A stretch of DNA of 63,954 nucleotides, the filler included, from Reticulomyxa filosa (Eukaryota; Protista; Foraminifera), in NCBI GenBank assembly GCA_000512085.1. It is 22 parts of 22 records of this genome, joined end to end, with 100 filler letters (N's around TTAATTAATTAA, not from the genome) between each part and the next. Parts side by side here need not be neighbours in the genome. Positions count along the whole stretch, not along the records: positions 55,795 to 57,057 come from ASPP01010962.1; 21 more parts are not named here. One strand, 5' to 3'. Below are positions 55,695 through 57,057 of the stretch, piece by piece. Each line of letters begins with the position of its first letter. Position 1 is the stretch's first letter. Below the pieces are notes generated by a model. It was not told the DNA's origin and did not search any database. It saw nothing but the letters and a program-made list of their open reading frames with translations. Position numbers and translations under genes: made by a program.

Positions 55695-55799
55695 NNNNNN
55701 NNNNNNNNNNNNNNNNNNNNNNNNNNNNNNNNNNNNNNTTAATTAATTAANNNNNNNNNNNNNNNNNNNNNNNNNNNNNNNNNNNNNNNNNNNNGCATC

Positions 55800-55928
55800 G
55801 GCTTACGGATACCTATTGGGTGCTTGGGTGCTGAGGACACCCATCGCAGCGCTTACGGAGGGCCATCCAGAAAAGGCTTAGGGAGGACATCCATCCGGGG
55901 GCTTAGCGGGTTTACGGAGGACATCCGA
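55800..55928. repeat. Short interspaced direct-repeat array (consensus GGCTTACGGAGGACAYCCAT) beside the Y1 transposase; REP-like/element-end repeats
   Basis: Copies: 55800 GGCTTACGGATACCTAT; 55833 GAGGACACCCAT; 55851 GCTTACGGAGGGCCATCCAG; 55875 GGCTTAGGGAGGACATCCAT; 55900 GGCTTAG (partial); 55908 GGGTTTACGGAGGACATCCGA. Runs to the contig edge. Confidence 0.8.
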
Positions 55929-56124
55929 ATAAACAAAAGCGAGCCCAATGGACCGCTAGCTAACAGCCCCAATATGGATAAAGGCATATCTATGGTTAGA
56001 CACTTTGATGACCTAAATGTAGGTGTGGTGGAAATATTTGAAGAAACAACAACGGATGGACGGCAAGTTGCCACAGTGAACCATGCTATTAGTTTGTGAG
56101 TGGAAACACAGGCCTTTTTTGAAA

Positions 56125-57057
56125 TCAACCAAACGCTTGTCGCGCTGCCGTGATACCTAACACGCGCTGTTGCTTGAGTTTTTCGCAAAACTGCAGCAAG
56201 CGTGCGGCACTGCCAATAACGCGATAGTAGGTTTTTTCCAGCGCTTCGCAATTTTGTAGCCAGGCTGGTGGGTTGATTTTGAGCCGCTTGATAATTGGCG
56301 GTATTTCAGTTGAAATGTAGCCGCGTTTACCGGCTTTGATTTGCCGGCCTGTCCATTCAACCAGTTGAATGTATTCAAGTAAGTTGTAGGGAATATGCTC
56401 CGGATTGTCGGTTTGGTGTGAATCTCCGGCAAAAGGTAGTAGCAATGGTTTCATCGGTGAGTTGCTGGCATCTAAGCGATTTTGAATAGACGTAAATTCG
56501 CTGCTCTCCAACGTATCAGCTATTTTAGCGCGAATGGGGTTTAAATCCACGTAGGCCATGGCTTGCAGCTCGGCACGTCATCCAGCAAAGCTTGTGATTT
56601 AAAGCGGCCTTCCCAAAATCTTCCGGTACAGCCATCCTCTAGGTTCGCCATGCGGGCAATCGGCTCGTTGAGGCAACGCATAAACCAACTTAAATCGTAT
56701 AACCGTTCACGGCGCAGCTCGATTTGCCGGATGGCCTCAGTGAGCTCGGGGTCGGACATGTCTTCGTTGTCAGAAAAGCGTTTAGCCAAAAACGGCAATG
56801 AAAACAGTGCACTCCAACGACGGATGACTTCTTGGGTGGTCAACGTTAACGCCCGCTGCTTTTGAATACGCACCACCAAATGGTAGTGGTTGGACATAAT
56901 GGCGTAAGCAGAAATATCAATCAAAATAACTCAGTAAGCTCAGCCAGCCTTGCCACAATGGCATCACGGCGATGACTGAAATCTTTGTTATCCACCACGC
57001 CAAACAAAAAAGTGCGGCGCACACAGCGGCTGACGACGTGGTAACTGGGCGTGGTAT
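56125..57057 (-). mobile_element. Bacterial Y1 HUH transposase (REP-associated tyrosine transposase-like, long form of about 310+ aa); 5' partial; two 1-nt deletions
   Basis: TTPSYHVVSRCVRRTFLFG...DFSHRR; [13 protein letters not shown] (HUH); [37 protein letters not shown]; [11 protein letters not shown] (catalytic Tyr). Frameshifts near 56925 (homopolymer) and 56577. Confidence 0.92.

Follow-up and report, generated by a model that had tools for sequence, protein, structure and literature searches.

Enzymes of TnpA-Y1 subclass 2.3 are characterised by the motifs NHYH, WE and YVDLNP, a distance of about 110 amino acids between the HUH and tyrosine motifs, a total length of about 325 amino acids, and a specific C-terminal domain (PMC6006769). 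Their genes are multi-copy, occur in the Chromatiales and Alteromonadales, and are rooted inside subclass 2.1, which holds most TIRYTs (PMC6006769). In the sole systematic study of the subclass, automatic and manual searches found no REP-like (repetitive extragenic palindromic) sequences adjacent to them (Quentin, Siguier, Chandler and Fichant 2018, PMC6006769). Here we consider a genetic element with such a gene in a stretch of 63,954 nucleotides, filler included, joined from parts of the Reticulomyxa filosa assembly GCA_000512085.1 (the window). The element lies in one 1263-nt piece of the window, positions 55795-57057 (ASPP01010962.1). Its repeated motif is written GGRTGTCC in the gene sense and GGACANCC on the plus strand.

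Subclass 2.3 is the only multi-copy branch of the RAYT-like (REP-associated tyrosine transposase) enzymes, the longest of them, and its DNA substrate had been reported as unidentifiable. For the tandem amplification of bacterial interspersed mosaic elements (BIMEs) by TnpA-REP, a model has been proposed that involves a nick, priming, a second cleavage and rejoining (Ton-Hoang et al. 2012, PMC3333891, Figure 7B).

The piece contains the right-hand four-fifths of an element of about 1.3 kb, in a decayed copy with two frameshifts; the element is similar to an insertion sequence (IS) and encodes a subclass 2.3 HUH/tyrosine enzyme. In related genomes the element is bounded by motif arrays at both ends, a flank feature that is undescribed for subclass 2.3 in the literature searched; the search for the family and the motif beyond PMC6006769, with journals partly covered, yielded nothing further.

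Ends of the element in related genomes

The relatives come from a scan of one genome per species, in which 571 were returned and 80 loci kept. The closest are a pond gammaproteobacterial metagenome-assembled genome (72%) and Rheinheimera (61%), and the host range also takes in the Vibrionaceae, Aeromonas, the Oceanospirillales and Endozoicomonas. The exact 15-mer of the window is found in none of the 80 loci, and only a core of 7-8 nt is common to them. This core, T-GGNTGTC-Y, stands at both ends of the element in inverted orientation: downstream of the stop codon the motif is seen 93 times in the gene orientation and 11 times inverted, whereas upstream of the gene 78 occurrences are inverted and 22 are in the gene orientation. 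The first downstream copy lies at a median distance of 196 nt from the stop codon (interquartile range, IQR, 177-205), and the first upstream copy about 70-85 nt ahead of the ATG. A T, at a position outside the search pattern, precedes the motif in 91% of cases. A search blind to the motif compared the two flank zones and took their best inverted match; the motif emerges from it in most loci, together with lineage variants of the end core, namely TGTCTGTCC in the Vibrionaceae, ATGCCTGTCC in Marinomonas and ATGGGTGGCAT in Colwellia. The variants of the core include CTGTCC and GGGTGGC.

Copies of the element from the same genome are 90% identical over 1272 nt in one case and 95% over 1303 nt in another. 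The homology ends at the motif at either side, and no target duplication is seen; hence the unit is an IS-like element of about 1.3 kb with short terminal inverted repeats. The initial annotation of the piece had taken GGRTGTCC for the site of cleavage and rejoining and had proposed to look for it in the flanks of homologs, where the GGNTGTC core indeed recurs at the ends in the 80 relatives. Given the conserved terminal inverted core and the duplications anchored at its 3' edge, described below, GGRTGTCC appears to be the site of end processing in this family, which fits the repeated cleavage and rejoining proposed in that annotation. The terminal core with its fixed geometry provides a concrete candidate substrate, and the motif-anchored duplications provide a predicted position of cleavage.

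Some further features of the end regions were observed. A well-conserved sigma-70-like promoter (TTGACATTAAC...) is situated between the left-end motif and the start codon (L001:100-150 and the 5' untranslated regions, UTRs, of L002, L003 and L005) in the closest relatives of the window copy, and it seems that the element brings a promoter of its own, placed immediately inside its left end. In two Pseudoalteromonas chromids (L204:2485-2500 and L205:2485-2500), GGGTGTC or GGCTGTC in the forward orientation occurs 2 nt before the ATG; the same copies also hold the inverted left-end motif about 85 nt upstream. About a quarter of the loci L001-L080 are broken or cut, for example L003, L015, L019, L030, L037, L039, L055, L058 and L061-L064. 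Decay of element copies looks common, some of the broken ones being due to contig ends. Other insertion sequences (IS4-like, IS30) occur in or beside the end regions in several genomes (upstream of the gene in L029, L201:18488-19750, L204:3684-4682).

Arrays of repeats at the element ends

Among the right ends, 31 of 70 have at least two copies of the motif; among the left ends, 31 of 54 do. The repeated units are of three kinds. The first is a short flank stutter, in which a stretch of 8-16 nt from just outside the motif is repeated 2-7 times and differs from locus to locus and from end to end. In the second kind the motif is repeated together with a short flank, and the window array is of this type. 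The third kind consists of stacked terminal fragments of 30-310 nt, each closing in the motif and a flank; in L001 and L037 they extend into the 5' part of the gene.

The repeats are concentrated outside the motif. In the 40 nt outside the innermost motif, a direct repeat of at least 7 nt is found in 42% of 86 ends. The zone just inside the motif has such repeats in 5%, random windows give 4%, and shuffles matched in composition give 8.6%. Relative to the 3' edge of GGNTGTC, the short-period duplications have a peak of left edges at offsets 0, -2, +1 and +2. Five of 100 positions account for 61 of the 228 edges, a count that includes several motif copies per array, which are non-independent; with one edge per end, the value is 18 of 37 against about 2 expected.

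The outward polarity of the stutter is identical at both ends. The two ends of a single copy have different stuttered flanks, as do different copies, and hence the stutter arose after insertion. Insertion into a pre-existing microsatellite was also considered and rejected, as the left and right flanks of one copy hold different stutter units. The comparison of arrays between close strains, suggested initially, was made on the relatives: two P. shioyasakiensis strains share the insertion site of the element, behind isocitrate dehydrogenase, with 91% identity in the flanking DNA, and the left end has six motifs in one strain and two in the other. Arrays are present in the finished replicons of cultured strains as well as in many independent assemblies. 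The architecture of the ends, the anchoring of the duplications and the variability of the arrays are matters of direct observation.

Several loci have more complicated structures. In L001:1-241, nucleotides 1-79 of the contig repeat nucleotides 163-241 (the 5' UTR and the first 21 codons) and have an abrupt junction to an inverted motif (TCCGAGGACACCCAT); a left-end fragment that extends into the coding region is here stacked outside the complete copy, and the contig begins there. Downstream of one Endozoicomonas copy (L037:3640-4250) there is an inverted motif array followed by a second copy of the gene, which breaks off after some 57 codons and is fused to a further inverted array; this makes a tandem, partly deleted pair of elements. 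In L044, about 400-460 nt upstream of the gene start, an inverted motif of the left-end type and a motif of the right-end type are turned towards each other at a distance of about 50 nt, and no gene lies in between; this may be a mini-element without a gene, or a product of deletion. In three independent assemblies, contigs stop in an array or in the element (the window at 55795, the end of L003, the start of L001), which suggests that short-read assembly is broken by arrays and multi-copy elements. The arrays likewise explain the frequent annotation of the genes of these elements just as "transposase" or "hypothetical protein", with no ends.

Origin of the arrays

HUH enzymes cut one strand, remain on the 5' phosphate and free a 3'-OH. 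The explanation that we favour, with moderate confidence, is a TIRtron- or REPtron-like element with ends that are nicked by its own enzyme and with arrays that are tandem amplifications of the end and the adjoining DNA, formed by priming and rejoining, as proposed for BIMEs. The enzyme would nick the strand reading GGNTGTC at the 3' edge of the motif or at most 2 nt from it, and would stay on the 5' phosphate of the flank. The freed 3'-OH of the element end, pointing outward, would be extended by the host polymerase for a few to a few hundred nucleotides; the extension would copy the flank again, and the displaced enzyme-linked strand would be rejoined to the new 3' end. Replication would then fix a tandem duplication anchored at the motif. 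Repeated rounds with varied extension length or second cleavage sites could produce the irregular look of repeats and spacers, and second cleavage at another copy of the motif could produce motif-containing units. In the window, the further motif copies and the TCCGTAAGC units would be such amplifications of the end and adjoining DNA.

If the nick is at the motif's 3' edge, the duplications should have outward polarity at either end, be anchored at the motif, consist of units specific to the locus and vary in unit length; all four are observed. We infer the nicking, the priming and the exact cleavage position from the sequences of the arrays. These footprints are the first sequence-level support known to us for the model with nicking, priming and rejoining, proposed but undemonstrated for BIME arrays.

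Several considerations weigh against this explanation. Cleavage at GGNTGTC is what we infer from footprints in the sequence, the edges of the duplications are ambiguous by a few nucleotides, and the larger of the two edge counts above includes dependent observations. To our knowledge, the Y1 enzymes studied so far require a hairpin beside the cleavage site. No conserved hairpin was seen here at the subclass 2.3 ends, and none was found in PMC6006769 either. The arrays of L044, L075 and L205 hold units with 30-310 nt of internal sequence, beyond what a simple sequence of nick, extension and rejoining would give. Finally, the window has no left end, its array is cut by the edge of the piece, and its broken gene cannot supply its own enzyme.

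A bolder proposal, which we offer only tentatively, is that a motif of 7-8 nt without a hairpin, in duplex DNA or in DNA that is transiently single-stranded, may be nicked by subclass 2.3 enzymes, which would leave heritable, growing, nick-anchored duplications. If this is true, the stutter would be an enzyme-written record of end processing and an unrecognised mutational signature of HUH enzymes, and the footprints would give the cleavage site of an uncharacterised enzyme class (GGNTG^TC or GGNTGTC^) from genome sequence.

The stacked long fragments may also need self-targeted insertion of shortened copies, which is the main rival of amplification by nicking and priming, or a co-contributor to it. 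Taken as the full explanation, it would make the motif copies stacked remnants of repeated insertions of new or shortened copies beside a resident end, the end or its T-rich flank being the preferred target, with later deletions leaving terminal fragments. Many arrays do consist of variable-length terminal fragments closing in the motif and a short flank (L044, the left end of L002, L075, L205), 5' gene fragments are joined to the motif in L001 and L037, and there is an analogy with the IS200/IS605 family, in which elements such as IS608 insert beside their own target-bearing end. However, the motif-less stutters of 7-16 nt of locus-specific flank, starting exactly at the motif edge, are not explained in this way. 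Moreover, the units of an array are usually near-identical to their neighbours and less so to other genomic copies, which is better fitted by local tandem duplication. We regard self-insertion as an unlikely sole source of the arrays.

A slim chance is left to the arrays being functional iterons, that is, binding sites for the enzyme or a host factor, selected for regulation or end recognition. In viruses and plasmids, iterated sites such as the iterons beside nick sites are commonly bound by HUH Rep proteins, Rep origin-binding domains are among the structural neighbours of the enzyme, albeit with low Z, and roughly half of the loci, in distant lineages, have multiple motif copies at both ends. 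On the other hand, about half of the ends have a single copy, much of the repetition does not contain the motif at all, and copy number, spacing and unit make-up are erratic and differ between orthologous loci of close strains.

Replication slippage independent of the enzyme, in T-rich, low-complexity insertion sites, seems quite improbable. It produces short tandem repeats, and the flanks just outside the motif are T-rich; but composition-matched shuffles yield 8.6% against 40% observed, the duplication edges are pinned to the edge of the motif with the same outward polarity at both ends, and the 40 nt just inside the motif are AT-rich as well, yet show no excess of repeats.

The window array could also be an artefact of assembly at a low-quality contig end, as the piece stops inside the array and the two single-base deletions in the gene could be sequencing errors. 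This is highly improbable, since the same architecture is seen in finished replicons of cultured isolates and many independent assemblies, and the first motif of the window is at the family's conserved distance from the stop codon.

A CRISPR-like adaptive locus storing foreign spacers, suggested by nothing but the superficial look of repeats split by short variable DNA, may be dismissed: instead of the regular 24-48-nt repeats and similarly sized unique spacers of CRISPR arrays there are repeats of 8-18 nt and spacers of 4-16 nt, the spacers copy the neighbouring sequence, the arrays stand at both ends in mirror orientation, and no cas genes are present in those flanks of the relatives that were looked at.

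The enzyme

By its motifs, the predicted window protein belongs to the RAYT-like Y1 HUH enzymes of TnpA-Y1 subclass 2.3. The window gene has NHYH, WE and YVDLNP, the latter two being invariant in 50 relatives, and the HUH motif lies about 110 amino acids from the tyrosine when read across the second frameshift. In the alignment of the 50 sequences every catalytic residue is invariant. Intact relatives have 305-338 amino acids, and the enzyme is about 322 amino acids long.

The Pfam and NCBIfam scans of the window gene pieces gave sub-threshold matches only, and the family assignment is taken from the intact relatives and the literature, not from the window pieces alone. The intact relatives match REP_Tyr_transpos at 1e-9 to 1e-10 and Y1_Tnp near its cut-off, these matches lying at or below the cut-offs. 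The sequence search of the PDB produced a best E-value of only about 0.9. The AlphaFold (AF2) model of the closest intact relative has a predicted local distance difference test (pLDDT) score of 88.9 and a predicted template modelling (pTM) score of 0.90. Its best structural match is E. coli TnpA-REP (4ER8; Z 13.0, root-mean-square deviation 2.8 A, 157 of 165 residues), and the next one has Z of 6.7; 4ER8 is also the top match of Foldseek.

The window copy

The only gene of the piece is on the minus strand and, as seen in translation, is spread over three reading frames (Table 1). The edge of the piece cuts it at the 5' side, so that about 14 codons and the entire left end of the element are gone. 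The last part of the gene, with coding span 56578-56128, includes a tail of 130 amino acids. With two 1-nt deletions and the 5' cut this is not an intact, potentially active gene; the breaks would reflect either a pseudogene or sequencing errors. The promoter scan of the piece found none, and terminator-like matches were weak. On the whole, the window copy is an ordinary decayed member of the TnpA-Y1 subclass 2.3 elements.

Table 1. Positions of the gene parts and array units in the studied piece of the window.
Feature	Position	Strand	Basis or remark
Outer array	55800..55918	-	motif copies 2-4 and TCCSTAAGC units; reaches the piece edge
TCCSTAAGC units of the outer array	55875-55884, 55851-55859, 55800-55809	-	sequence, repeat search
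8-nt tandem micro-duplication AGCACCCA (gene sense)	55816..55832	-	TRF: period 8, 2.1 copies, 100% match
Motif copy 4	55835-55842	-	sequence, repeat search
Motif copy 3, degenerate, GGGCCATCC	55860-55868	-	sequence, repeat search
Motif copy 2, then partial ATCC (plus strand)	55885-55892	-	sequence, repeat search
TCCGTAAAC, gene-sense successor of the innermost motif	55910-55918	-	sequence
Motif copy 1, innermost, GGATGTCC	55919-55926	-	predicted true right end; position agrees with the family
3' untranslated part, about 198 nt, repeat-free	55927..56124	-	length conserved in the family (median 196 nt, IQR 177-205)
Stop codon	56125-56127	-	translation
Gene piece C, tyrosine motif and subclass-specific C-terminal domain	56125..56578	-	72% identity to L001, 144 amino acids
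Catalytic tyrosine motif YVDLNP (part of MAYVDLNP)	56536-56553	-	in gene piece C
Frameshift 2, 1-nt deletion relative to L001	56578..56579	-	window GGATG-ACG, L001 GGATGAATG; alignment column 531
Gene piece B, NHYH, WE and subclass-specific insertion	56579..56924	-	weak Y1_Tnp and REP_Tyr_transpos matches; PMC6006769 signature
W-E motif (within FWEGRF)	56610-56615	-	in gene piece B
HUH motif NHYH	56880-56891	-	in gene piece B
Frameshift 1, 1-nt deletion relative to L001	56921..56922	-	window TTTTG-ATTG, L001 TTTTGTATTG; alignment column 187
Gene piece A, N-terminal part	56924..57055	-	starts within conserved TTPSYHVVSRCVRR; translation, alignment to intact L001

The first GGATGTCC, 198 nt past the stop codon, is predicted to be the true right end of the element. 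Within the 3' region of the window, conservation with L001 is limited in the alignment to the last 25 nt or so before the motif. The array spans 55800-55934. On the plus strand motif copies 1-3 are preceded by G(C/T)TTA(C/G)GGA, which means that in the gene sense they are followed by a TCCGTAAGC unit (TCCSTAARC), whereas copy 4 is preceded on the plus strand by a duplicated GGTGCTGA stretch instead. The last unit, a fifth GGCTTACGGA at 55800-55809 (TCCGTAAGCC), has no motif. The micro-duplication begins 3 nt past a motif copy. The array family is also recovered by a repeat search of the piece, and a degenerate 17-mer has three matches in the array compared with 0.00 expected from shuffles. The repeats are 8-18 nt long, the spacers 4-16 nt, and the distances between unit starts are irregular (25, 34 and 50 nt). 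The length of the array is a minimum, as the sequence stops at the piece edge, 55795.

The observations of the initial annotation on the content of the piece are confirmed by these data. It had named a RAYT-like Y1 HUH gene, and NHYH, WE and YVDLNP allow one to specify TnpA-Y1 subclass 2.3. The array it placed about 200 bp past the stop codon begins at a measured distance of about 198 nt, all copies point one way with no GTAG-tagged hairpin, as was claimed, and the micro-duplication noticed in a spacer is the one detected by TRF at 55816-55832 (period 8, 2.1 copies). The repeat array proposed there is real, but the five to six copies reduce to four GGRTGTCC copies, all in the same orientation, and one motif-less unit. 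The reading as a repeat-spacer locus with unrelated spacers does not hold, as the "spacers" in the relatives are stuttered adjoining flank or the element's own terminal sequence. The overall interpretation is partly supported.

As regards secondary structure, the innermost copy of the window (55907-55935, minus strand) can be folded into a bulged 9-bp stem, GTTTA(tt)CGGA-tgtcc-TCCGTAAAC, in whose loop part of the motif lies. The foldable stem is limited to this copy and is not conserved in L001 or other relatives. In the Rheinheimera copies, stems of 5-7 bp surround the motif (CTGGT-GGGTGTC-ACCAG), and most other lineages have no such stems. The Rfam search gave no match, and the GTAG tag is absent from the window array. 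A hairpin as a family feature was rejected: the innermost window copy folds, yet its stem is unconserved among the relatives.

The motif outside the element

In 174 kb of the relatives' flanks there is no excess of the motif (0.82 per kb with the degenerate pattern), its counts in 41 kb of plasmid are at chance level, and the left-end block has no extra copy on a chromid of 899 kb. A dispersed REP-like family is unsupported in this sampled sequence (the flanks, the plasmid and, for the left-end block, the chromid).

A metagenome scan with GGATGTCCTCCSTAARC retrieved at least 120 contigs with a single match each, from unrelated habitats, none of which has DNA similarity to the piece. Among these contigs only two remote protein matches were found. 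The metagenome matches are considered chance ones, and there is no close strain for the comparison of arrays among them. One metagenome contig holds a remote relative (30%) of gene piece B at L141:1399-1674, about 900 nt from the matching 17-mer at 2578-2594.

Comparison with known systems

The described members of subclass 2.3 (PMC6006769) share with our element the protein signature, the presence of several diverged copies per genome and the gammaproteobacterial distribution. The difference is in the flanks: no REP-like sequences are reported there, whereas in the present relatives a short inverted core, accompanied by arrays, delimits the genes.

The IS200/IS605 elements (IS608, ISDra2) are similar in having the Y1 HUH core, no target-site duplication and small single-gene units. 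However, they have subterminal hairpins on one strand instead of inverted ends, the tyrosine motif Y---Q instead of Y---NP, and about 150 amino acids instead of about 322.

In TIRtrons, too, a RAYT-like gene (TIRYT) is flanked by terminal inverted repeats in place of REP hairpins; the distances are fairly constant, and copies of the repeat sometimes form dimers or clusters (Di Nocera et al. 2013, PMC3733652). In our case terminal inverted repeats at fixed distances are present in the relatives, and the right end of the window is at the expected distance. The TIRYT consensus is GGGGWSAS, unlike T-GGNTGTC-Y here, and neither motif-anchored flank stutter nor stacked end fragments are described for TIRYTs in the passages of PMC3733652 that were consulted.

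The REPtron/BIME system with E. coli TnpA-REP (PMC3333891; 4ER8) has the same enzyme fold (Z 13.0) and inverted repeat clusters around the gene; inverted repeats on both sides of the gene are present in our relatives, while the window holds the right end only. In both systems the number of tandem units varies between strains, and the published amplification model predicts the footprints seen here. Unlike REPtrons, whose repeats are palindromic hairpins with a GTAG or CGTC tag, the present elements have no GTAG tag and no conserved hairpin, the multi-copy gene and its ends move as one unit of 1.3 kb, the enzyme has twice the length, and dispersal of the repeat is not seen in the sampled sequence. 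The initial claim of a system distinct from REP and BIME is not supported, as the arrangement is that of a hairpin-less REPtron or TIRtron and the amplification model has already been published for BIMEs (PMC3333891). In kind, the arrangement is that of a REPtron or TIRtron without hairpins, in which inverted motif arrays with varying numbers of copies enclose a RAYT-like gene.

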